Shown: positions 2,791 through 20,515 of the stretch, piece after piece | How positions within the stretch are numbered: the first letter of the stretch is position 1 | Layout: each line of letters opens with the position of its first letter | Assembly (NCBI GenBank): GCA_964199315.1 | Contig: OZ116698.1 | Coordinates: 43,772,001 to 43,836,000 of the forward strand | Direction of reading: 5' to 3' | DNA from: Orbicella franksi | Lineage: Eukaryota | Length of the DNA stretch: 64,000 nucleotides | The notes under the pieces: generated by a model | The model's input: the letters and a program-made list of their open reading frames with translations, nothing else | Databases searched by the model: none | What the model was told of the DNA's origin: nothing | Made by a program: the position numbers and the translations under genes

Positions 2791-4160
2791 GAGGCAATTC
2801 CAGTTTCACCCTCAGAACTTGGTGAACTGTCGATATCATTGTGTCACAACCCAACGGATCAAAAACTTACAGTCAAACTAAACTGCGCTAGAGCTTTACA
2901 ACCAATTACGAAGGATGGGAGACTAAGTAAGTATTTCTTATGCAACGTATACTTTGAATGAGATCGGCTCTTACTTGGTGTAAAAGACACAGCGGACGTA
3001 AACCAATAGAGAGCAAAAGTACAAAAGAACAAGGAAACAATGAAAACAATAGGTTGGTGAGGCGGTGCTTTTTTGTGACGTGTTCTGTGTCTTCTACACC
3101 AAGAAGGAGTCCACAGATCTGAGAAAGGAAATGCATAAGAGTAAGACAATTAGGCCGGAGTAGTTATGTTTTGACTTTTCTGGGAAAACAATAACGTCAT
3201 TTTCTTTCTAACTAAAATAAGACATTTTGAACAGAACATGATCTACGAGAAGCGAATAAACCCATTTCAGGGTTATTTTTGTTCTTCCACGGTCTCGAGA
3301 CTAAAATATCTTTTGAATAGTCCCAATTTGTCTTGTACGTGTTGTCCCTCAGTATTTTGTTCTGTTGTCAGGACAAGTCCACTACTCCCGAGTAGAGAGA
3401 CGTTAGAGTAAAATGTCAACAATTTGCCCCAGCCAGCGTTCGGAGAAAGACATCTCATTGCTGAGTCAACTGAAGCATTAAAATCAGTAGCCTACTTCTC
3501 ACAAATTATAGATTAAAGAAAGTTCGTAATTCCATATTATGTTGCGAAATACCACCAAAGATACAAATGAATTGGATAACATGCATGATTCTACCAAGCA
3601 AAATAGAACAAGTATTTGGAGGAAAGGAGAGGATTACAAGGCTGGAAATGAAGTATAATTCAGGGGATCAAGTTTGATTTTGCGAAAGGATGTCGAGAAA
3701 TGAAAACAGCCATTATGGTGAAAGTTTTACTCTTGTGGTCACTATTTTCTTTTGGAGGGTGGGAGGGTGGGTGGGGGCCAAGGGCTTATAAGCGGGAGGG
3801 CTTATAAGCGGCAGTTCATTAATCGATTTACCCGCTTTTTCAGATCCTTTTGTTAAACTCGAGGTTACCTTCTGTGGAAGAAAGCTGAGCAGTCGAACAA
3901 CAAAGACCGCGCATAACACTTTGACACCAAACTTCAGCGAAGTGTTTGTGTTCGACATGCACTCGGACAAACTGCCGCAGGTCACGCTCATGTTCAAAGT
4001 TAAGCATCGAGGAAGAATGCGTGACGTATCGATAGGCACGGTGCATCTTGGGTATTGCGTGAATGTCGAGAGCGAGTACAAGCACTGGGAACAAGTAATG
4101 GAAAAGCCACACCTTGAAATAGAACAGTGGCATCCAATTCAGGATTATTTTGTCGAATGA
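2791..4160 (+). CDS. Synaptotagmin-like protein, last two exons (C2B domain), 5' exons not identified
   Basis: Exons are 2791-2926 (ttttgcag|GAG...CTA A|gtaagt) and 3844-4160 (ttttcag|AT CCT...GAA TGA). They join in phase 1 to give EAIPVSPSELGELSISLCHNPTDQKLTVKLNCARALQPITKDGRLNPFVKLEVTFCGRKLSSRTTKTAHNTLTPNFSEVFVFD...VSIGTVHLG...HWEQVMEKPHLEIEQWHPI. This matches the synaptotagmin C2B pattern (GEL.ISL.Y, L.V...AR.L, DPYVK, P.FNE.F.F, HW..M...P......WH.L). Confidence 0.85.
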
Positions 4161-5171
4161 ATTGTTTTCTTTACGTTTCGTGCTTTAAAGTTGTAAATAG
4201 TGATGTTAGCGCAAAACCCGGCAAATTTGCAATCTGATTGGCTTCGCAGGCACCTAGCACTGACAGACAGTCGGTATTCGGAGCCGGAGCGCGGGGTTTT
4301 TTTATGTATCATTGCCAAAAAGAATGGTGTTCTATGTTAAATATATCAGCGAACTTGCTTCTTTCAAAACAATTAGAACAAGTAGTCACAGGTTGCACAA
4401 TGAGAGATTTGTAGAGGCCAGTGAGCTGCATTGTGTATCATACTTTCCCGGGCCGGGGTTTAAAAGGTAAAGTTTTGTGTGGAAATACCATTTACCCTAG
4501 TTAGTTATTTAAAGGTAAGAATTTGGCGGCTTATGCCTTCGCTGAGCAGTTTATACAAAACAATGGTTAGCGTTATTTATGAGCTACTGAAGATAAAATA
4601 TGAAGAAAGATGTAGTGTTTTCTCGTTTTGTCAAGAACAAATAGTCGACTTCGGCAATACATATTTAATAGTTAGTAATTTCAGAGAAGATTTACAGTGC
4701 TATTTAGAAATTAAAGAGCTGTATATAAGCCCTGGTTGTTTTGTATCAAACGAAGAAATGACGGTTTTCTGTCACGTTACTTATACAGTTAAAAATCCAT
4801 CGGTCTTTTTTATTATCTGTTTTAAGCGGTCTATTGAGATGAGTGGCTTCTTATCTCCTTCTGACCAACTTAAGACGCTTCACGAATGTTTACTTGCATC
4901 AGCTCACATCTGCATATTTAAAAAAAGACCTGCAAAAAGGTACTCGGGGAAAAAAAAACAACTTACAACCTTGTCAACGTTTTAGTGATCCAGGGCAATG
5001 TTAATAATCATTACTGCATTACACCTATTGTCTGATTATAAGACCACCTTTAACTACCTATTTAAAAAATGCGTAGCTTCTCTGTAGCTCTTCGAAGGCA
5101 CTATTAGAAATTCTTCATTTATACCAGCGTTTTGGCTTGGCTTTCTTCCGCGCTTTGTTATGATAAAGAAA

Positions 5172-8100
5172 TCATTCGTCATGCCAGTCAAAGACTGAGG
5201 TGATCGTTTCCTTCCCTCCCATGACTTCGCTGTCTGGCCCCTGATAGAACATTTCCTCTCCAAAGACCCTTGTACCAATGGGACGCAGGACCCGTTTTAG
5301 GTAACTATGTGCGTATTTTCCCCTGGCTCCTAGTATCTGAGGGGCCCAGTTATAAAAGCTCTTTAGAGGGGCCATAAGAGAGTCAGCCAAATCATGGTCC
5401 GCAATGTCAGCATAACACGACACCAAGACTCCATCCACTATCATGGTCCCTTCCTGGGTAACTGGCGCAAAGGCCCCCTGCCTTTCAACTGTCGAGACCG
5501 CTACCACCATCTCAGGAATGGGCCTCCGGCACTGTGGAGCCTGGACGACAATGCGGTCCCCGGGTTTGATTTGGGACGCATGCACTGAGCGGGAGGTATG
5601 TTCTCCACGGGGACCTCGCAAAAATTCAATTTTGAAAATGAGATGAGCTTCGCTGATGGTGAGTTGGGTTTTGCTTTCAGTCGTGATGGTAATAAATTGG
5701 CCTGGAGATTATTAGAGGAAGAAAAGAATTAGACAAAGTAAAATCATAAGAAGGGAAATAAGTGTACTCAGGTTAAAGCGAGAGAGGCGCGGAGGATTTC
5801 TTTTGAACATCAAAATAGCGATCGCGGAATTTAGGGCTGACATCTTTTCCACTGTCAGCATAGGAAGACTAGCTCCTCCCTAGTTCCCTTCTCCTTCCTC
5901 CTACAAAAGATACCGGCTATCTTGTGGGTTAAAATTAACGAATTATATACAGCACTGGTGTCTGACATCGAGAGAGAACAATGTTGATACTTAACAAGGC
6001 CTCTCAGCTGGCGCCTTCTTGGGCCTGGAAAAATCAAGCTAGCTTTTTGGAGGGGGGGGGGGTGGGTGGGGGGCGTTTACATTTCTCAGACAGGTATTTT
6101 GGGGTGCAATTACGGACTAAATGAACGAAGTCTATTCAAGTCAGTAACATCTTACCTTTGTAGTCAGGTTCTTGCTCCAGGAACGTAATGACAGGACTGA
6201 ACACAATCTGACCTTTCTTAGTGACTGTCTTTACCGTGTCACCGATGGCCAGGTCGCTGATGGGAATCTTCTTTCCAGATCTGAGTTCAACTTGTGACTT
6301 GGACGGGAAGCAGGTCGATCCACCAGACTGCTGTACATTTACATTGGTTACACATCCAGCTGAAGTGTTAGAAAAAACACAGATGTTTGTATAAGTAGTT
6401 ATAACTTTGATCATCAGGGGTCTTGAAAGAAATTTTATTGTTAAAGGTCCAAGTTTTTGGTGTACCTTCGGAAAATCAGTTGGTAGGTGGTGTTACGAGA
6501 AATTTCCAATCTCTATACTCTGTGTTGTGTATAATATTTCCCTCTTATTCTCTCTTTTAACTAAACTAGATAATACGGTTATAATACTGAAGGGCCACTT
6601 GGCTTGTATGAAGACTTTACCTCTTTTTTATGATACTGTTAAAGTAATAGTAGCTCGCCCAGAATAGCGTGGCTAGCTGCGAGCTACTAAGGCTTGTAAA
6701 GGAAGTTTTGTAATAATAAAGTACTGTTACTGTTAAATGGTGGTGCGAGGTGGTGTTACCAAGAATTCGGTATTCTTTTTGCTAAAATTTGCATGCGTTC
6801 TACAAATTCAGCCAGTGAACGAACTGTGCTGGAATTTTACTTTTTCATTCAATCTTGACGGACCCTTTAATAAGACTGATCTTTATATGAACCTTCAAGG
6901 ATCATATAAGAGAAACGTAGGACGTCATAATAACGAAATAAAATGACTGATAGCACCAAATCTGCGCAGGAAGATTAGAGATGTTTAGAGAGCTCTCTGC
7001 TCTGTTTTGCGTCACCCTGTTACTCGCTCTCGATTCTCCTTTCTTTCCAATTTTTTCTCTCCAATAATTCTTACAATAACTCATTATTCATTCAGCAATT
7101 CATACCTGTAGGAGCGGCCCACAAATGAGCGGACTGGAAATACTTAGGACCTTTCCCCTGATGAACCCCGTTCCCATTCCACAGCAGAACACCGCAATCT
7201 TCACTTGCCTCGCTACCACTGACTTTGAAGGACATTATTCCAACTTTGCCACTGAAATCTTTCGTCTTGTTAGACTGGTCGGGTTCTCCATACATTTTCT
7301 TCAGATAGTTTAAAAGTTCATCTCGTTCATGAAAGTAAAAGTAGTTTTTCAAGCCTTGCTGGCTCCCAGGCTCCTCGGTTGTGACATTTAACACGGCACT
7401 CATGCGCAGTATGCATGTGGCATTGTCCGGTAACTTACGCTTGTTAAGGTCTTTAAAAAGGTACTGCTTCACGTCCTGGTCGCTATAAAGTCCGCCATAA
7501 TCGATGTTACCAAGATACATCTCTTTAAGAACTGAGAACTGTGGCAACATTTCTGTGGAAAGGGTTTGCACAAAGGTTAAAAGAGTGCTAGTTGTTGTCA
7601 AACGGGTGAACTGGTTAGGAACCACTTTTTTGGGGGACATATCGCCCAGTAAGAACTGTTCACAGACTTATTAATGAGTTAAACCACGGAATCATGGAAA
7701 TAAACAAATCAGCAAAACTTGCTTAATTCAGAAAATTCTGGAAACCCAATGCTGTGACGCAATTCATCGTCAATAAGAAAACACTTGGTTATTCGGACAT
7801 TTTCCGTTTCCATAGATAGTCTGAAAATATATGATGACCGCCTTCGGAAAATGTAGCTCCCACTTCCAACTTTTAACTTCTCCTCCCGTTCTCAAGTCCC
7901 TAATCCCTATGACTTGGAATCCGGCCCAACTTTGTGCCAACAAAAATGAAAAACTGATAAAAAAAAAGCAATATCTGGAAACACAGGTTCGAATTTTGAT
8001 GCTGATGCTAAATATCTCTCAAACCGGGTTCGATTTTGTTCAAGATGGATTTGCACTGTCGCATGATTTTATGCCTGTAAAAAAAGGAGAGCGTAAAGAA

Positions 8101-9007
8101 ACCTTCAATCAGGGAAAAACGCATAAAATAACACGACAGAGAAAATCCATTCCATGCTCGACTGGCGCTTCAAATCGATCGGGTGCCGCTGGCGTAGCCT
8201 GTATGGAGACGTCCAGTCTTTTTACGATTTTAAGAAGGAAATCCGTACATCTGCTTACATCTAGAGGCAGACGCCGACGCCATTGTGGAGCGTCTCAATT
8301 TGTTAAAGCTGTTGTTGCCTGTGGCCATAAAATAGCAAACCACACTGAGAAGAGATCTTTTGGTGGCGTGATATAACAGGCGAGAAAACGGAATGCTTTG
8401 GCAAGATAGAAGCATGTTTAACATTCATTGTAATTTTCTTCGGGCAGGAATGGCAGCATAGATGCACGTTGGAAAAACAATGGACTCGCCGCTGCAACTT
8501 CTCCTGAAATTTTTGAAGCTTGTAAGTCCAACGTGAAATTGAAAAGAAAAATGTTACAAAAAGTTCCATTTCAGTCAAAAAATTACTGAATTAAAACAAA
8601 AACCATCACAAATTTAGTTCAGATCGTCTTTTTTTTCAAAAAAGTTCAGGTATTGCAGCTCAGGATGAAAAACACGTTCTTGACATACAATTTAGCAGCC
8701 GGACCAATCGTCTCAAGGATTTTTATTCGCTATCTCACGGCATCCTTGGTCTTTTCTGTGCATGAACTGTCTCGAAATCTCATAAACACATTGCCAGATT
8801 ACAAGGAAGGCCTTGCAGTGTCGCGTGATATTTTTATTGAACCCCGGTGCGGATCAACAAGACACTAAGCTCTATGCGGCTTCCAACGCGTAAATGAAAC
8901 TAGGCATATCAAACCGTAAAATACAACACAGATATAATGAAGTAATACTTACTTGAAAAAGCCACAGGAATAACTAATACCAGCAGTATCATTATCACCT
9001 GCTTCAT
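5172..9007 (-). CDS. Secreted Tae4-like (NlpC/P60 amidase-like) domain fused to a Hedgehog-type Hint/Hog autoprocessing domain, 411 aa
   Basis: Exons are 9007-8953 (MKQVIMILLVLVIPVAFS, signal peptide), 7552-7106, 6359-6156 and 5701-5172. All three introns are GT-AG and phase 1, and the lengths 55+447+204+530=1236 nt form one open frame. Exon 2 contains LPQFSVLKEMY, NATCILRMSAVLN, YLKKMYGEPD, DFSGKVGIMSF and CGVLLWNG (Tae4-like). Exons 3-4 contain CFPSKSQVEL, ISDLAIGDTV, FSPVITFL, LTISEAHLIF, GAFAPVTQEGTMIVDGVLVSCYA and DHDLADSLMAPL (Hint plus sterol-recognition-like region). Confidence 0.9.
6648..6689. repeat. Mini inverted-repeat element (11-bp perfect arms), possible internally deleted MITE
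   Basis: tagtagctcgc (6648-6658) and gcgagctacta (6679-6689) are exact reverse complements with a 20-nt spacer. The element lies in intron 2 of the Tae4-Hint gene. Confidence 0.45.
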
Positions 9008-11031: not shown

Positions 11032-14000
11032 TTATACCTCAATGATCGCAGCCAGAAAATGAGTGTCAGCGCTAACCCATTTTCCAGGGCTGTCTTCTTC
11101 ATGAACAAACATGAGTGATTCTTCCTTTAAAGTCCAGGGTGAGCATACACCGGTTTTGCCATGACAAAAACTGTAGTACTTAGAGCTCTGTCGGATTCTT
11201 GTCACAACCATATAATGGTGTTCACCGAGATAACTTGTCTCTTTACTGACAATGACTGGGCAGCCCCTCTGAAGAAGGTTAATTATCAAGTCTGTCCAAG
11301 GGCCATTCTTCCCTTTATGATCTCCTCGGTGAATAACCTTGAGCTCTCGCCCCAGGAATGTCTTGATTCGCGTCATTTGAGCAGGAGAGGTTACTCCTCT
11401 ACCGTGAGGCGAACAATGTGATCCAAGCTTGTGAAAGATTCGGCGTGTCACGTTCTCCACCGATGTGTCCATTGTTAAAGGCAGATGTGTGGGCAAACCT
11501 ACAATATGACTTATTGATCTAAGAAAGAGAAGATTTACATTCAAATTCAATTAAATTGTAGTACTTTTCCAACACAAGATTCTCAGTTAAATAAAATAAT
11601 GAAAATTTTTACTGAGTAGCTCACAGAATAAGTCACAGCACGTAAGAAAATCCATAACAAGACAGAACATAACGCAGTTTCGCCAAAATTGACACATCAA
11701 AACTTGATTTAAAGCAAAGATGGCGGTGTAATTGACCAATGACTCGTTTGTAACCTGTTTTCTACCAATCACGCCAAAGGGTCATTCAGCTGCAATATCA
11801 ACTGTGAATTGTACTTCTCCCGAGCTAGCCATTGGCCTATTGCTTTACAAGGAGTTCTAATGTTCTTGATGACTTACCTCTGAGACAACACCGAGATAAC
11901 TTTAGTTTTAGTTTAACGACCACCACTCGAAATCCACCCTAAATTACGACAAATACTTACGGGTATCTTGATTTGGAAGTCCTCGCCGCCATGTTGTCAT
12001 AGTAACCGAGTATTTTTGTCCAGGCCACTGGACCCGAGCCCGACATGCATTGGCCGTTTTGGGGCTGGCGGTACCTTGGAAACAACTCTTCGTGAGGAAT
12101 CCTGAAATATTCGTCAGACAAAGCGCGCCGATTTCTGCTACTTCTGAGGATAATGCCGTAGTTAATGATCATATCTCGAGCCCCGCGGGTTCGCAGCTCT
12201 ACTTTGAAGCGTATTTCTCTTCCTTCAAGATGTTTTCGCACGAAACTCTCATCTGCATCGACTTTCACTTTGATGAAGCGATCACCCATCTTTGTCAGTT
12301 TGAAGAAACGTTTGCTAACCATTGTCATGTCCAGGTAACCTTCTCCTTCACAAACGCCACACAACACCCGGCAAAGTCGTTTCTGCCAATGTTTCTTCCA
12401 GTTCTTTGTCTTCTTCATGTCACCGTCCCGAAGCCCAACAAACTTGATACGGACTTCACGGAACCCTTGTCCGAGTGGAATCCGGACCGAGTCGCCCGGA
12501 CGGAGTCCCAATTCCGCCTTGAACCCATCTTCAGTCTCTTCCACTTGGAAATTAAATTCCGTTTCCAGGCTGGTTGGTTTTGCCGTTGGCTCAGTTGCTA
12601 ACGGCTTAGCTGGTGTTGTGAGTTGCGGTCTTACACCTTAAACAAATTGTGACAAGTATTTAGATTACAATAGGGTCCGAAGCATGCACGAGCGAAACAA
12701 AAAGAAAAACACCCTCGCATACGACTCAAAACGCACTATTAGAAGATGACGATGAATTCACCAATACAATGTCTGTTACTGCAATAAACGTTTTAACAAT
12801 CAAGTAAACACTCAAGTTGCGTTCATCACAGTCAGAAAGAAGCCTTTTGATAACGAAACCCAAGTCTTAGCTCTCATGTTATATAGCCTGCAAGCACGTT
12901 TAATATTGTTCCCGGAGTCCTAAAACCCATTAGGGACCCTTATACACGTCATTTACCTGTCTTCATCGACAGCCACTGGAACCTATTCCACTCTGGCATC
13001 TTTTGAACTCGTTCAGCCAACTCGTCCCATTCTTTTTTCAAGCCCGGTAAAGCACGGGTAACTTGTTCGTCCAAATTCCTCCAGTTAATATTCTGTGTGA
13101 TAGATCATCACACTAGTTACCAACAATCTTTATTACATGGTAAGATTAATATATAGTCACCCCTAACACCTTTTTATCTTGTCATTGGCAAGCAGACGGG
13201 TGACGTAAACACAGAAAATAATTAACCAAGAGATATGGTCTTGATTATGTATTACCAAATTTTCAGAATTAACAACAAAAGCAGTGAGAATTAATATTTC
13301 ACGCTGAAGACGAGACTTGCCACTGATTAGTTGGCTAGTAGTCATCACAGTCCGACTTTGGGTTGAATAGAATAGAGTGAAATAGAATAGAGTGAAATAG
13401 TATTGTATGCCTTTCAAATAGATTTGAATCTGGACAAATTTGTTGTTATTCCCTTCTTCTCACAAGAAATTCAGGAAGTAGCTAAGGGCGACATGGCATT
13501 AACAGTGACAATACAGGAAGGTCAAACGGAATAACGAAAAGAGCGCTGTCCCGTCTGCTATTAGAACAGGATTGGGGGATAAAATTGGCGTGACAATAAG
13601 AGGCTTCGCTTCTCAAACTACGAAAAGGGACAGCTCATGCCGAGACTTCTACGTGAAATTCAGCACGAAAATTCAACCCTTTTCATAGCGGATTTTATGA
13701 TTAAGTTAGTCCTAATCCGCAGTACAGCGATCCTTTATTCTAAAGAGACGATGTCGTTATAAGCAGCAGCTTATCAGGTTATTTTTGGATCGTGCTTCTT
13801 CAGAGTCCATATGTTTATATGTTGATCTTTTATATTATGCTTGTAGATCTTAGTTGATCGGTTCTGACCTGTGCTGTCTTGTTCACTAATCCACTGGATA
13901 ATCCGCCAAGTATGGCTTAACTGCCATTATTCTAATTAATCCGCCCACGCGTGTCTCACCTCATTGCTTTGATCTCTCAGTAAGTTTAGTTGGCATGGTT

Positions 14001-17000
14001 AGTATAAACCAGTAAAAAAATGACCATTTAAGTCTACCTTGGAAATCTTGCAGGCCCGAATGAGGGTTATATAGTTTTGGTTGAATTTATCAGTTCTCTT
14101 AACAATAACAATTTCATGTCAACTTTCATGAAAGCTATCAAACAACATACATAATCATGTACATGTAAGATGTTGTCCGGATGAACTGACAAATTCTCGT
14201 AACTAGAAACTCACTAAACTTATGGCAGTCAGTAGAAGGTTTCCGATTTAAGCTTTTCAAACACGATTTTTTTTTTTGAAACTGCCATGTTTAATTATTA
14301 AAAACACCCTTAATAGAGATACACACCCAAGAATCAGTATCAACACTCCTTGTCGCTGCAACTATTCTGTTCACATCAGTGTCTTCACATGCCATAAGCC
14401 CATCAGGTCGCAGTCGATACACTTTGTGACAGCCATAACCATTCTGATTGGCTTGTGCAGTAAGCACATCTGAGGGGCTTGGTAAAGCTCCTTCTTCAAC
14501 AAGACGGTGGTCACCAGTTTGCCTCGCTGTATGAAAACATAACTTTTAGTAAAACGAACATACAGTTACATGTCCAGTCGTTTGCTCTCTCCTTACTTCA
14601 CTGGTAATTCATTTTACAATGCAGGAACCCAAGTTACATTGGAAAGATTTCTCAGTGAAAGCATGCAATTACTAATCTACAAAACGCACATGTCCACTGT
14701 TCATGTACATTGTAAGATATTCACTTCTGGGATCATTTTTTTTTAATCTATCTATTTTGAAAGGTACATCTGCCAGGATCAGAAACAGCTTTTGGGTATG
14801 TTTTTTGCACATCAATCATGATTTTCATAGTCTGTGCACAGAAGTTTAATTTTGAGCACGTGAGGGATGCAAGGGCACGAGATTGACACCCCCTTGTATT
14901 CAGGCTTTTTAAAATTCCCTGCAGTTAATGCTTTCATGTGATCTCAACAGACACAGGGTAATACATGTGCATGTGATAAGAAATCCAAACAGATATCACA
15001 CTAGTAAAATTTACTGCACAGTAAATTTTGTGAAGTTGGTCCAAATTCAAGTGTAGCTGTTGCAGGTTAACTTTACCCTTGGTGCAAATTGGTATTTTCC
15101 CTTGTTTTTGTGTAATGGTAACACATAATTATTTACTATATGGCTAACTCCATGAGCTGGCAAGATGACCCATATCCTGCACTGTGATGGCTACCCGAAT
15201 AGGTAAGATGGCGCTTTCTTGCCCACTCAATCACACGTGCGTGTACCTGCTGTGGGCCGCAATAAAATTTTGTTCTTTTCCATATAATAAATCCTTTACT
15301 GACCAAGCTTGTTTAATCAAGATGGCTGGATATTGGGTGCTTATGGACCTCAACTACTTCTTGGTCCATAAACATGCAAAAATCCAGCCATCTTCAGTTG
15401 ACTGAACAAGCTTGGTCAATAACCCAAATTTATATGAAACAAAGGAAGATACAAAATTGTGCCAATGGTGCTAAGGGCTGTCATTAAGGGTCCTAACATG
15501 TAACATCTGTACTTATGCTTGATTTTTCCTTGATGCTATGGGAGAAATTGCTTGTTGTTGATACAATTCACCCACCGAGTAACAAGTTTGCTATGGGTGT
15601 GGAGAACAAGGCTACTTGTGACTCAAAACTTAATGACAGCCCTGGTACCTGCTGAACCACAACATAGCCAACCCTTGCCTTGGGCTGTGTACCACCCATA
15701 TATCTAAATTGGAGGTCAAAAATATCAGATTTTGAACACCTGGCTTCATTAGTGTATCTAAGTGTAATTTTCTGCCAAAATTATCTGAAATGTATCTGAA
15801 ATAAACTTAGGCAAATCAACACTCCTGTCTGAATGCAAAAAAGATTTCCATGTACATCTCCAGTAGGACAATTTCTACACTCAGATTACAAAGATGATTT
15901 GTTTGGGAAAGCCTCTGATGGTGGAGAACACAACATAAGAGACCTCCACCAGAAGAGTCCAGTGAGCCAATAATTATGTCACCATATCCTGTACAGGTGC
16001 ATTCACAGGTTATACATACATAGTAACCAGACCTAAATCAACCATATACACTGTACATGTACTTACCAGCTGAAATGATAACATATTTTTCACCACTTTT
16101 GCCATTCAGTTTAGCTTCCCAATAAGCAACATACTTGTCTGGTAGATCCTTTCTAAAGATAGGCCTCAAACCCATTATGTCATCCTGACTTATAGCGTCT
16201 GATAGGGTGTAAATTTCCTCCTGTGCCTCCCATGATACATTGTTATTGTGCCATGATGTATTAGATAAAGTTGGAGGATGAGTAACCAAGATATAATCAT
16301 CACCATAGTTCCAGCCCTTGTTTCTGTTTTTGTTACTGAAAGGTGGAAAATGTGAGTTGTCGTTATGAAACAAGGAGGCAATTGTTAGGTTAAAACGTGT
16401 GAGTGAGACAAATTTTATGACTTTGTGCACTTAACAATCTACAAAATTAATGTTTAAGATGCACCAGTTACATACCACTCATAATTTTAGGAAAACAGGA
16501 TTTTTCGGGTAAACAATTCTTGCCAGATTATACAAGTATAAAGGACAATAAGTACTATAAATAGGACCTGTGTTATTTTATGCTATTGCCAACATCAAAA
16601 ACTGAGCATGAAGAAGTTTGGGGAAGGGAATCCCTTGATCGAAACAGTCCCACCACAAAAGAACATGCAATGTGGAGTATGGAAATATGGAATGTACCCT
16701 TCATTCAGATGTTACTTTCTGGCTATTTAGTCACTGCTGTAAGTTCATCCATGTTTGTTTTTTGATGAACTTATGACAAATGTTCTGGAGGGTATATTGT
16801 AGCCTCCACACAGGTGTATTAACTAACTAACTGACCATCAGTAAGCTATTCTTGACTACTGACCTTTGTGCAACCTGACTTTTGATTATAGGTAATTTGC
16901 ATCTGGCTTAAACATTACAAAAAAAATTACAAAATTTGTGTATTTATGAAATCATTTTAAAACACTCTATTTGTAACAACTCAAGTAATTCTTCAAAAGT

Positions 17001-20000
17001 TGCTGTTTTATAAATGTCAAATACACCTTTTTGCAATGACAACTTTCATACTTTCAAAACAGTATTTAGGAACACTCAAAATGCATTGTCATCTGACATG
17101 GTGCCCAAAACATTGCTTCTTCTCTAATAGCTGTTCTGTTACTGCGATGATCATTCTTCCCTTTCATCTACAACTGCAGTTCATATATGAATTATTTCAT
17201 ATATACTTCACATCATTTCACTCCTCACGGGAAGATATGAACTCAATTAATTGACCTCGCTCCCAATGTGTGGCTTCATAGCTCAGTTGGTAGAGCATCG
17301 CACCGGTATCGCAGAGGTCACGGGTTCAAATCCCGTTGAAGCCTTGATTTTTTTCAGGCTTCTTCTTTCCAATTGCTTAAATTGGAAAATTTACTACGAT
17401 GATCATTCTTCACTTTCAAATTCACCAGTGCTAAACAACTCATGTAAACAACTTTACCTCCACTACCTCTCCACAGATTTCTAAGTTAAATGCACTATTT
17501 GAAAGCTCCGGAAATTTAGATTCCGCAGTTCATAATGATTTAGAAGCCATGGTATGTTAAACAGCCTTTACCGGTACATATGTTGTTACCCATTATCTTT
17601 TATATTTGTATTTCATCTCATTTCTGAGTTCTATTTAGACATGGCTTTTTGTCAGATCTGTGACTACACTTGACTGGACCGGAAGTGCTTTTAAATTTGT
17701 GAGCATGCACTCCATCGAAGCGCAGCCTGGAGCCATGAAAACATATGTATTCTCTGGCTAAAATATATAATTTATGTTGTAATACCGAGCCAAAAAAACG
17801 AAAATAGAAAAAATACAGAATATCAGTCGGCTCACCAGTAACCAACGTTGAAATTGCCTGGTATTGTTTATGAAAGATTTGCGCCGGCACAAAAATTGCC
17901 CGGGGAAATTGCAGTCAAAGGCCTCCGTCCATCATCTCGTGTTTCCTCGCACATATCCACGCCAGGAACCACGCAGGCTGGTCCACTCAGCTGTAGTCAC
18001 AGACTAGACGAAAGCTATTGATAAGTTTCACCCCTTGTCTCTTTTCTCTTTTAATGCGCAGCTGTTATGAAACCTGAGAATCTTTCCCCTCGATGAGAGT
18101 TAATAGTTAACGACGATAATAGAAACTTGAGATGTAATCGGAGTGTCATAATTACAAAGTGGCAGGAGAGATAATATTCGGAAATATAAACCGCTTTTGC
18201 TTCATTTAAATCCCTTTTGAACGACTCAAAAAGACACCATAACACAGGTAAACAGCACATTTATTTTTACTGCTGATATAGTGTTTGGGTCCCCTGTCCC
18301 TTTTGTTGTTATAACCACTGTTGTTACAAAGGTAGTCAGCAGTGACAGACAAAACAGAAAAATGCTCATTGTAGGCTACATGTGGCAGGGTAGCTGTCCA
18401 GAAATAGAATTTTATCAGCAACAAGTTCAATTTAATCCTATACAGTTAAAACTATTAAACCAGGCTGCAAAAAAATTAAAAGGACTGAACTTTTAGAAAT
18501 GCTTTGGTCATGATCAGGCATAGGTTTGATGCATATTTAAATTTTCTTAAACATGTTGGTCTCTTTAAGTGACCTTTGTGAGTTAGACTGAACATTTGTT
18601 TGGGCAAAAATAAAGTGAATGAGCCAGCCACACAAGGTTCCCCTATAATTTCTTTCAGCACTATTGTTTATCATCTACATAGACCTGCTTTAATTCTTTC
18701 AGATCTCTTTCATTGAATCCTTTGATCTCCCAGCTTTTTCATATCAAAAGACAGGGGATATAGATCTAGATGTGTCTGACCATTCAGAGATCCCACAAGA
18801 TTAACTCAGGTCAAGGGGTTGATCAATTTATAGATAATATTAATCCCTAATAAAACTCAGTCAAACCATTCTTGACAGGTTCTCATGGCTCTTCCTCAAG
18901 ACAGAGTGTTGATTTCATTTTGTGGGAAATCAAAACCCAACTCATCTTACAATACATGAAACTTAATCTTCAAAGGAAAATTGCTTAAGTTTATGTTTTT
19001 ATCCTGTTTGGGCTTAATTGGAAACGTAAATAACATACTTAAAAAGGTATGCTGAGTATTTCCCATAGTTTGACTTATAGTTTTTGATAGAGGGAAAAAA
19101 TCTTTCAGAGTGCACTTTAAAAATGCCAAACTGTAATCTGGCTTAAAAAGATTTCAATCAAAGAAACGGGCTTCATGGAAAATCCAGTTACAAAATCTCA
19201 TTGGATTTTATGGTTATTATTGAACTGAAAAACTTGTGGGATGGGTTTGATTATACTAAAACCTTAATCTGACTAGGTTGTGCATGTAAGGTGCATTGAA
19301 GCCATTTGACCAACTTCTGGAATTCTAACCCAATATCCGTAAAAACCCGCAAAGTGAAATCCACTTATATAATTAAGATTAAAGCTCTTTTAGGAGGCCG
19401 AAAGCTTTATATGCACGTGTAAATCACCGCTTCTAATTCCACTTCTTTGGTGGCATGGGCTTTTAAAGACAAAAATTTACAACAAAAAGATGCGTTTCTT
19501 ATTGAGACTGAAAAGCCGTTCAAGACAACGCACAAAAAAGTTCATTAGGAAGCTTCTTCCGATGTTAATGACAGAGTTGAACACCCAGAACAAATTTTGG
19601 CGCCGAGTGATTAAAGTGGTTTAAGTCAATCCAGGTTGTAAGTGTCGAGGTCAATTAAGAAACCTTCTAACTAAGAATTGTACTCAGCCGGGTTGTTTCG
19701 AAATTTGCACGGCTTTTACTTGTGCACTCACAATGTTCATTACAATAACAACAGGTCTATTGTCACCGTCAACAGTGAAAGGGCTTGAGCAATTTGTAGG
19801 TTAATTTCGTAGTCAATAAGAGTAATTAGGCAAGCATCAAAGCGACCATTCATTGGTTCAGTGTCGATGAAAATTGCAGGGTTCCATCAGATACCGTGAA
19901 GTGGCGAAGACGCAAACAGCGATCTCCGCAGCGCCGACAAATTAAATTTACCTTTTATCTTTACGACGATTTCTTCCGGAAAATAAAGCATGGGGTTTTA

Positions 20001-20515
20001 CCGTGCAATTATGAGCTTGGAATGCCTAAGCGGTGTCTTTGTGTTGGTCGCCTCCAATGACACACAAGAAAGCCAACGAACAAACGAAAGCTGTGGTAAC
20101 TTTAAAACCAGTCCGAATAAGTTCATTACATGGATCGAAATAAAGCAAACATAGATGGTAGAATAGTCCAAGGATACTTCATTAAAACACTCACTGACTT
20201 CAGCGTAAAACTAGGCTCTCATGCCATTTACGTCGTACGACATGTTTACAGAACCGCTTACTAAAGAATGAACACTCACCTATTTGATTTTTCGATTGCG
20301 TAGACGACTAGAAATCCCACTAACAACACCAGAATCAGAAGGCAAATGAAAACACACGTACGAGGAGATCTTCTTCGTCTTTCGCCTTTGCATTCCACCA
20401 CAACTTCTTCTGTATTTTCGACCGTCGTTTCGTCCTCCATGTTGTCTGGACAGAGTTGCGTCGTTTCCCCGTTCGGTGGTTTCTCCACAGTGGATTTTGC
20501 GACTGCCTTTACCAT
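11032..20515 (-). CDS. Type II membrane protein with bacterial-type prodomain and C10/C39-like papain-fold peptidase-like domain (catalytic Cys replaced by Ser), 667 aa
   Basis: Exons are 20515-20280, 16335-16067, 14526-14327, 13092-12957, 12636-11961 and 11518-11032. All introns are GT-AG with matching phases (2,1,0,1,2), and the total of 2004 nt is open. The N-terminus has RRRRSPRT followed by a hydrophobic CVFICLLILVLLVGFLVVYAI segment. Later motifs include RPIFRKDLPDKYVAYWEAK, YVIISA, CMSGSGPVAWTKILGYYD, PVIV...HHYMVVT and GKWVSADTHFLAAI. Confidence 0.85.
15140..15430. mobile_element. Degenerate interspersed repeat (non-autonomous DNA-element-like)
   Basis: Repeated internal motifs gcaagatg/gtaagatgg/caagatggc and gaccaag...cttggtc are present. 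It resembles a common coral interspersed repeat recalled from memory and was not checked against a database. Boundaries are approximate. Confidence 0.4.
17139..17418 (+). mobile_element. tRNA-derived SINE-like unit bounded by ~26-bp direct repeats
   Basis: Direct repeats actgcgatgatcattcttccctttca (17141-17166) and actacgatgatcattcttcactttca (17393-17418) enclose a tRNA-like cloverleaf carrying A and B boxes. It lies in intron 1 of the C10/C39-like gene, in antisense orientation. Confidence 0.7.
17272..17343 (+). pseudogene. tRNA-like sequence (Thr-GGT-like), probably a SINE component rather than a functional tRNA
   Basis: The acceptor stem ggcttca/tgaagcc, D stem gctc/gagc and T stem acggg-ttcaaat-cccgt all pair perfectly. 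The anticodon stem (tcgca/cgcag) pairs poorly around ccggtat. Confidence 0.6.

Follow-up and report, generated by a model that had tools for sequence, protein, structure and literature searches.

A 64,000-nucleotide stretch of the genome of the coral Orbicella franksi (assembly GCA_964199315.1, contig OZ116698.1, positions 43,772,001 to 43,836,000; hereafter the window) carries on its minus strand a gene, here called Tae4-Hog, in which a domain with the predicted fold of the bacterial Tae4 amidases precedes the Hog module (Hint plus sterol-recognition region) known from Hedgehog proteins. The entire Tae4-like domain lies on a single exon with phase-1 introns on both sides, between an exon that encodes only a putative signal-type peptide and the exons of the Hog module. 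This layout is best explained, at what we judge to be about even confidence, by a bacterial-derived module having been joined to a signal exon and a Hog module through phase-1 introns, probably after the module had already been domesticated in animals. The evidence comes from the exon structure and its splicing, the fold of the domain, the intron pattern of the other Hog genes in the same genome, orthologues in corals and a sea anemone, and a second, unrelated architecture of the same module in annelids.

A complete Tae4-like domain on a single phase 1-1 exon

Sequence reading and exon assembly yielded four coding exons and an open reading frame (ORF) of 411 codons, with all three introns bounded by GT..AG and in phase 1 (Table 1). 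Exon 1 encodes nothing beyond the start codon and an 18-residue hydrophobic stretch, read by eye as the putative signal-type peptide, and its last base opens the next codon. Exon 2, which encodes the Tae4-like domain, is delimited by an acceptor AG at 7554-7553 and a donor GT at 7105-7104; it opens with codon positions 2 and 3 and closes with position 1, so that the introns before and after it are both in phase 1. Each of the three junctions is crossed by raw poly(A) RNA-seq reads obtained from a coral carrying the same species label (71 reads for 7552>8953, 67 for 6359>7106, and 59 for 5700>6155), contigs from two independent RNA runs match the same junctions, and depth within the introns is near zero; one further RNA run had zero reads on the gene. 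Sequence and RNA junctions thus show that the preliminary description of this DNA had placed the 447-nt phase 1-1 exon (7106-7552) exactly, in coordinates and in phases. The GC content of exon 2 (0.45) is similar to that of the other exons and gives no signal of foreign composition, so that any acquisition would have to be old.

The identity of the domain emerges from profile and structure comparisons. The window copy scores 22.7 bits against the Pfam family Tae4 (PF14113), under the cut-off of 27, which four orthologues (P0009, P0015, P0018, and P0013) pass with 27.1-29.8 bits, and a profile made of coral sequences only matches solely Tae4 structures (4J30, 4HFF, 4JUR, and 4HFK; E=1.8e-9 to 6e-5). 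An AlphaFold2 model of the 148 exon-encoded residues (predicted local distance difference test 89.9, predicted template modelling score 0.85), used as a Foldseek query, returned 11 matches at E<=1e-3, every one of them a Tae4 or Ssp1 amidase, with template modelling (TM) scores of 0.66-0.79 overall and 0.73-0.79 for eight Salmonella and Enterobacter Tae4 entries. These alignments, of 162-172 columns against chains of 154-163 residues, run along the length of the exon product, and in a coarse alignment the bacterial Tae4 proteins, which occur stand-alone or as the C-terminal tip of polymorphic toxins, mostly stop 0-4 residues past the coral exon end. Since the fold matches cover the exon and the bacterial proteins end near its end, exon 2 is, as modelled, one complete Tae4 fold (a papain-like peptidoglycan amidase) whose domain borders are the exon borders. 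Fold model, profile, and exon assembly therefore agree with the earlier proposal that the whole domain sits on one exon between a signal-peptide-only exon and the Hint exons.

The cysteine of the Tae4 catalytic triad is retained as Cys65. In place of the Tae4 histidine the window copy has Gly, its relatives having Ser, Asp, or Asn, and the neighbouring residue is a newly conserved Cys; in place of the aspartate it has Gln, next to a conserved His. A full Cys-His-Asp triad was not found in the aligned coral domain.

A shared phase-1 intron ahead of the Hog module

The downstream exons match the Hint family (PF01079) with 50.7 bits for exon 3 and 80 bits for exon 4, full-length orthologues reaching 147-152 bits, and neither the Tae4-Hog protein nor its orthologues match the Hedge domain (HH_signal, PF01085). 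An alignment with a mollusc Hedgehog and the genome's other Hog domains shows that the module keeps the residues of autoprocessing, namely the nucleophile in Cys184-Phe-Pro, S-E-A-H (S-x-x-H), and SCYA, and its C-terminal stretch aligns with the Hedgehog sterol-recognition region. At the general-base position of Hog (window 6180-6200, in I-T-F-L-E-Q), the window species shares Glu with its closest relative; Oculina, Acropora, and Montipora have Asp, and the orthologue P0027 and a paralogue carrying a WSC carbohydrate-binding domain have His. Judged by these residues, the Hog part looks functional.

A search of the 497-Mb genome with the exon protein found a single copy of the Tae4-like domain; a PF14113 profile search of the genome gave no match, this search being insensitive enough that its controls went unmatched too. 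The genome holds four Hog genes: two true hedgehogs with HH_signal, the WSC-Hog gene, and Tae4-Hog. In each of them a phase-1 intron precedes the catalytic Cys by 9-16 codons, and because this pre-Hog intron is common to them, intron 2 of Tae4-Hog probably predates the fusion; the intron 3' of the Tae4 exon is thus most simply the ancestral pre-Hog intron. In WSC-Hog, as read from the genomic sequence and not from RNA, the WSC domain (38.1 bits) occupies a phase 1-1 exon of 294 nt immediately ahead of the Hog exon, and a Thr/Pro-rich exon ending likewise in phase 1 comes before it. The comparison with paralogous Hint genes bearing other N-terminal domains, suggested when the exon was first described, hence showed the pre-Hog intron in all of them and the layout repeated in the WSC paralogue.

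Coral orthologues also have intron 3, which falls within the Hint module, but the three remaining Hog genes of this genome lack it. The Hedge domain of the genome's hh spans at least two exons, the second running from phase 0 to phase 1, and is not a single 1-1 exon. Pairwise identity among the four coral Hog domains is 31-38% (the wider Hint comparison was a word-indexed search of 8 proteins); no clear sister to the Tae4-Hog module stands out among them, and the source of this module was likewise left unsettled in PMC2362128.

An ancient gene in hexacorals

Full-length orthologues are present in Acropora millepora, Montipora, and Oculina, where RefSeq names them "desert hedgehog protein-like", "uncharacterized protein", or "tiggy-winkle hedgehog protein-like". 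Pfam at E<=0.01 on the A. millepora RefSeq protein shows Hint alone, which accounts for the N-terminal domain having stayed unannotated. The same four exons and phase-1 positions recur in Acropora (L009) and another coral (L096), and in related corals every exon-level ORF reads through the whole domain into a G/GT donor (the slash marks the splice site). Its conserved neighbours, introns, and RNA support mark Tae4-Hog as a genuine animal gene.

In the sea anemone Actinostola, the outer junctions of the domain are conserved, with the signal exon ending in TCA A/GTAAG, the exon start one codon ahead of L-P-x-F as in corals, and a phase-1 end before Hint; the intron within Hint is apparently positioned differently, according to tblastn mapping only. 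The Tae4-Hog gene is ancient in hexacorals. Every scleractinian sequence extending to the start of the exon has a methionine there; we dropped the idea that it might be a relic bacterial start codon, as Actinostola has Arg and the Nematostella model Asn at this position. The deposited Actinostola protein model is partial and lacks the first two exons. The second of the two introns lying inside the anemone domain (weighed below) contains the ends of the flanking exons, splice sites included, in three or four tandem copies (Table 1), which represent either an assembly artefact or the trace of an intron gained by tandem duplication.

A second architecture in annelids and the placement among bacterial homologues

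The domain set comprised 14 coral-type sequences (clade A), 11 sequences of a second clade (clade B), 9 metagenomic bacterial sequences, and 80 bacterial loci from at least six phyla, of which 105 rows entered a maximum likelihood (ML) analysis in IQ-TREE. Clade B was at one point considered to be cnidarian, possibly a second, Cys-less Nematostella homologue; a cluster look-up ruled this out and assigned it to the tubeworm Ridgeia piscesae, the 565-aa exon upstream of the domain belonging to KAK2183530.1. This protein of 1093 aa combines an N-terminal region without a Pfam match, the Tae4-like domain (40 bits), and stanniocalcin-like repeats, and the junctions predicted from the Ridgeia DNA are exactly those of the deposited protein. 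The annelid domain lacks both the catalytic Cys and the His. As in corals, the module is a single phase 1-1 exon, found in two species between the 565-aa exon and the stanniocalcin-like exons. A search of the coral genome with the domain protein did not find clade B. Unusually for an animal gene, the upstream ORFs of the annelid loci share 1-4 nt (ATGA) with one another in each of the two species.

Support was 99/96 for clade A, 99/93 for clade B, and 100/100 for the two together. The joint clade attaches between a Myxococcota-type group and the rest, on a stem of 1.73 substitutions per site from all bacteria and without supported nesting in any bacterial subgroup. The expectation that the domain would nest among bacterial sequences was thus neither borne out nor contradicted. 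Both clades lack the Tae4 histidine at the same position, and both have an H-Q motif.

The domain is rare outside bacteria. Thirteen proteins matched among 1.84 billion representatives, mostly coral-type or clade-B fragments, together with one clear bacterial Tae4 and one repeat-protein artefact; the eukaryotic matches in this collection come from hexacorals and siboglinid-type annelids, with none from other eukaryotic groups, and no bacterial member of the coral-annelid clade was found there. Tae4 is carried by 226 confirmed bacterial genomes from at least six phyla, the nearest ESM Atlas clusters are all bacterial, and the nearest bacterial match lies at the C-terminus of an Rhs protein of 1244 aa. 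From this distribution, in a family that is overwhelmingly bacterial, we take the Tae4-like module to be probably, in the end, of bacterial origin.

Table 1 Positions of the Tae4-Hog gene parts and of related features. Coordinates without a locus name refer to the window.
Feature	Position	Strand	Description
Exon 1, coding part	8953..9007	-	55 nt; Met-Lys and hydrophobic stretch to A-F-S; donor GTAAGT
Intron 1	7553..8952	-	1400 nt, phase 1, GT..AG; from sequence and RNA
Exon 2, Tae4-like domain	7106..7552	-	447 nt, 149 codons, symmetric phase 1-1, residues 19-167
Intron 2	6360..7105	-	746 nt, phase 1; splits the amidase-like from the Hog module, 16 codons before Cys184
Exon 3	6156..6359	-	204 nt, phase 1-1; linker and start of Hint, with Thr183/Cys184-Phe-Pro and the general-base position (Glu)
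Intron 3	5702..6155	-	454 nt, phase 1, within the Hint module
Exon 4, coding part	5172..5701	-	530 nt with stop; remaining Hint (S-x-x-H, SCYA) and sterol-recognition-aligned C-terminal region
WSC exon of WSC-Hog	L003 383-676 (contig C8, about 4182896-4183189)		Hog exon from L003 1463
Ridgeia piscesae-type loci	L007 6113-10007; L091 7404-12660		Two stanniocalcin-like Cys-rich regions
Tandem copies, Actinostola sp.	L097 6103-6263 and 7727-8508		JAUJYZ010000887.1

Other features were noted around the coding exons. The transcript contig continues about 2.2 kb beyond the stop codon at equal depth (window about 2800-5171), which suggests either a long 3' untranslated region or read-through into the next transcription unit. 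Within intron 2, at 6542-6691, RNA contigs of two runs reach a summed depth as high as 346; their ends are loose at either side and a piece of 65 nt is skipped, a picture that resembles transcripts of a short dispersed repeat located elsewhere and not a part of the Tae4-Hog gene. Two ORFs of the next gene upstream (window 11032-20515, minus strand) had no match in Pfam.

Weighing the origin of the fusion

In the history that we favour, recombination within pre-existing phase-1 introns would have brought a Tae4/Dae4-type module together with a signal-peptide exon and a Hog module, at the latest in the last ancestor shared by stony corals and sea anemones. The module would most likely have met Hog as an already domesticated animal exon and not as a raw bacterial gene, an option favoured over direct capture because the coral and annelid copies group together in the ML tree. 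If these copies descend from a common animal ancestor, the presence of the same 1-1 module in two unrelated architectures is the classic signature of exon shuffling; if they do not, the coral and annelid 1-1 exons are a striking repeat of one mode of capture.

Several observations weigh against this history. Between a phase-1 signal exon and the phase-1 Hog intron, a 1-1 exon is nearly forced, so that its symmetry is weak evidence when taken alone. The coral and annelid exons differ in their 5' boundaries by about 7 residues, and in their 3' boundaries by 1 residue. Clade A keeps its placement when analysed alone, whereas clade B alone shifts to a long Acidobacteriota branch, and because the two then attach to different bacterial branches, independent transfers could also account for them. 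Approximately unbiased (AU) tests likewise keep a pairing of clade B with Acidobacteriota (p 0.25) and a grouping of clade A with the Myxococcota-type set that excludes clade B (p 0.115). In pairwise comparison, the window domain scores higher against bacterial Rhs-linked Tae4 (47 bits) than against the annelid copy (35.7 bits). With the Tae4 His and Asp both replaced, the enzyme activity of the coral domain is uncertain. Finally, the Actinostola domain is cut into three exons by two inner introns, one in phase 1 and one in phase 0.

Not all of these points carry equally far. The single-exon state holds for the stony corals, which have no inner intron, and not for Actinostola; as neither the stony corals nor the annelid copy has such an intron, and a bacterial gene starts out intronless, the two in the anemone are probably later gains. 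The grouping of clades A and B is favoured but unproven. The exon phases, modest evidence by themselves, gain their value from being combined with what the paralogues and the annelids show: the 1-1 exon has weight because it coincides with the whole domain and with the pattern seen in paralogues and orthologues. The original reading of the exon as a footprint of exon shuffling is consequently supported in part, by the shared pre-Hog intron, the WSC 1-1 exon, and the annelid 1-1 exon. Common descent of the coral and annelid copies is secured neither by the AU tests nor by placing each clade on its own.

The insertion of a bacterial gene straight between the signal exon and Hog, as first proposed for this locus, would mean that an entire tae4 gene became an exon after landing in the signal/Hog intron of an ancestral Hog gene of hexacorals, and that the annelid copy stems from a separate transfer. 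The exon does cover what would be a whole bacterial ORF, its 3' intron is common to all Hog paralogues, the best pairwise match outside corals is bacterial, and the AU tests permit separate coral and annelid origins. We judge such a course of events unlikely: the two animal copies are united at full support in the ML tree, they lack the histidine at the same position and have the H-Q motif in common, no bacterial sequence lies near the coral clade, and a signal-exon-plus-Hog ancestor gene was not identified. Of that first proposal, the bacterial character of the family is supported and the direct insertion is not. Quite unlikely, in our view, is an ordinary fusion of a secreted amidase gene and a Hog gene by read-through or deletion, with the flanking introns gained or slid later and the 1-1 symmetry reflecting the general phase-1 excess of secreted proteins instead of shuffling. 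Such an account would have to accommodate a phase-1 intron before Hog in all four Hog genes despite their unrelated N-terminal domains, the same layout in the WSC paralogue, an annelid module that is a 1-1 exon in another context, and outer junctions kept from corals to the anemone. It draws on the mobility of intron positions (the anemone has two extra ones in the domain and an apparently shifted one in Hint), on the exon fragments copied in tandem within the anemone intron, such copying being a known route to intron gain, and on the commonness of 1-1 exons, which make up roughly one internal exon in ten.

Vertical descent of an old eukaryotic family, lost in most lineages and involving no bacterial transfer, was an outcome that would have spoken against a bacterial source. 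We regard it as highly improbable: the domain does occur in two distant animal phyla, and in the tree it falls within no bacterial subgroup, yet the restriction of eukaryotic matches to hexacorals and siboglinid-type annelids, the breadth of Tae4 across bacterial genomes, and the bacterial nature of all nearest ESM Atlas clusters point the other way, and PMC8713801, in a passage citing Chou et al. 2015, calls eukaryotic tae homologues horizontally acquired.

Predicted processing and relation to known systems

The product of the gene would be a secreted 411-aa precursor, whose Hog part is expected to attack the Thr183-Cys184 bond. The predicted cut frees residues 19-183 as an amidase-like fragment of 18.4 kDa, about the size of the N-terminal Hedgehog product (Hh-N), which may receive a sterol at its new C-terminus as Hedgehog does, and which would then act on or bind bacterial peptidoglycan at the epithelial surface. 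Exon structure, splicing, modelled fold, conservation, and the intron pattern of the paralogues are observed here, while autoprocessing, the lipid adduct, activity, and the evolutionary order of events are inferred.

In Patthy's modularisation model, class 1-1 exons are the shuffled modules of extracellular animal proteins. The Tae4-like module resembles these in being one domain on one exon, with phase 1 on both sides, placed after a putative signal exon and present in different architectures; it differs in its probable bacterial effector origin, in having two architectures so far, and in a common descent that is not secure. To bacterial Tae4, both the effectors of type VI secretion systems and the Tae4 domains of Rhs and other polymorphic toxins, the coral domain is linked by its predicted fold (best TM 0.75-0.79) and the Cys-containing helix motif, and it departs from them in its introns, putative signal peptide, Hog fusion, and replaced His and Asp. 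A Tai4-type immunity gene, for which no search was made, would not be expected in the genome of an animal.

Hedgehog itself offers a parallel, since Hedge is related to DD-peptidases (PMC6027127). Both proteins have a signal peptide (putative in the coral protein), an N-terminal domain of a cell-wall-hydrolase type, a phase-1 intron, and a Hog module with Cys, S/T-x-x-H, and SCYA, whereas the coral N-terminal domain is predicted to have a papain-like amidase fold and Hedge has a zinc LAS/M15 fold, and Tae4-Hog has an extra intron inside Hint and Glu in place of Asp as general base. The suggestion in the preliminary description that the gene echoes the origin of Hedgehog fits the predicted fragment size, but goes no further than analogy, as Hedge in this genome is not a single 1-1 exon.

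The gene family is not new. Buerglin (2008; PMC2362128, supplement) listed the Acropora millepora expressed sequence tag DY579185 and Nematostella Nv 120428 as Hog proteins, described the cysteine-conserved motif at their N-termini as novel, and found nothing similar to it outside Cnidaria. The DY579185 sequence matches the clade-A proteins P0017/P0105, and by sequence both it and Nv 120428 belong to the Tae4-Hog family; they share with the coral protein a presumably secreted, cysteine-conserved N-terminal domain followed by Hog, to which we add the recognition of that domain as a predicted Tae4 fold and a description of the exon structure. The eukaryotic homologues of bacterial Tae4 are known as domesticated amidase effector 4 (Dae4; Chou et al. 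2015, as cited in PMC8713801). In a separate line of work, Margolis et al. (2021; PMC8713801) reported that Nematostella nvDae4 cleaves peptidoglycan and kills Bacillus in a manner dependent on Cys63, in a text that makes no mention of Hint, Hog, or Hedgehog. Like nvDae4, the coral product is a presumably secreted animal protein apparently derived from Tae4, with its cysteine in nearly the same place (Cys65 in the coral, Cys64 in Nv 120428, Cys63 in nvDae4), and from these positions nvDae4 (cDNA LOC5507694) may be the anemone orthologue, encoded by the same gene as Nv 120428. The coral protein differs in lacking the Tae4 His and Asp, such that an activity like that of nvDae4 is not assured. 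A full-text literature search found no open paper linking Tae4 or Dae4 with Hint, Hog, or Hedgehog. What seems new is thus the recognition of the N-terminal domain as Tae4/Dae4, along with the exon-level evidence from paralogues and annelids.

These results bring together two literatures that had apparently never met, one (2008) on Hog proteins of cnidarians whose N-terminus was unexplained, the other (2015, 2021) on horizontally acquired antibacterial amidases of the Dae4 type. They correct public names, the genes labelled as desert or tiggy-winkle hedgehog-like having no Hedge domain, and reveal an amidase-type domain that Pfam misses at default thresholds in the orthologues tested. As a broader and more tentative possibility, which we consider doubtful in its full extent, a toxin domain acquired once by an early animal may have become a mobile 1-1 module that was shuffled onto Hog in hexacorals and onto stanniocalcin-like domains in tubeworms, with the antibacterial Dae4 proteins of corals and anemones, the experimentally active nvDae4 among them, being Hog-processed and possibly sterol-tethered at the cell surface. 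Together with Hedge, WSC, and the cellulose-binding Hoglet of choanoflagellates, Hog would in that case serve as a general delivery device for modules directed at glycans or cell walls. If the link between the two literatures holds, nvDae4 may be Hog-processed and possibly lipid-anchored in vivo, and a bacterial weapon domain would have been built into an animal gene by the same modular logic of signal, domain, and Hog exons joined in phase 1 that may also lie behind Hedgehog.

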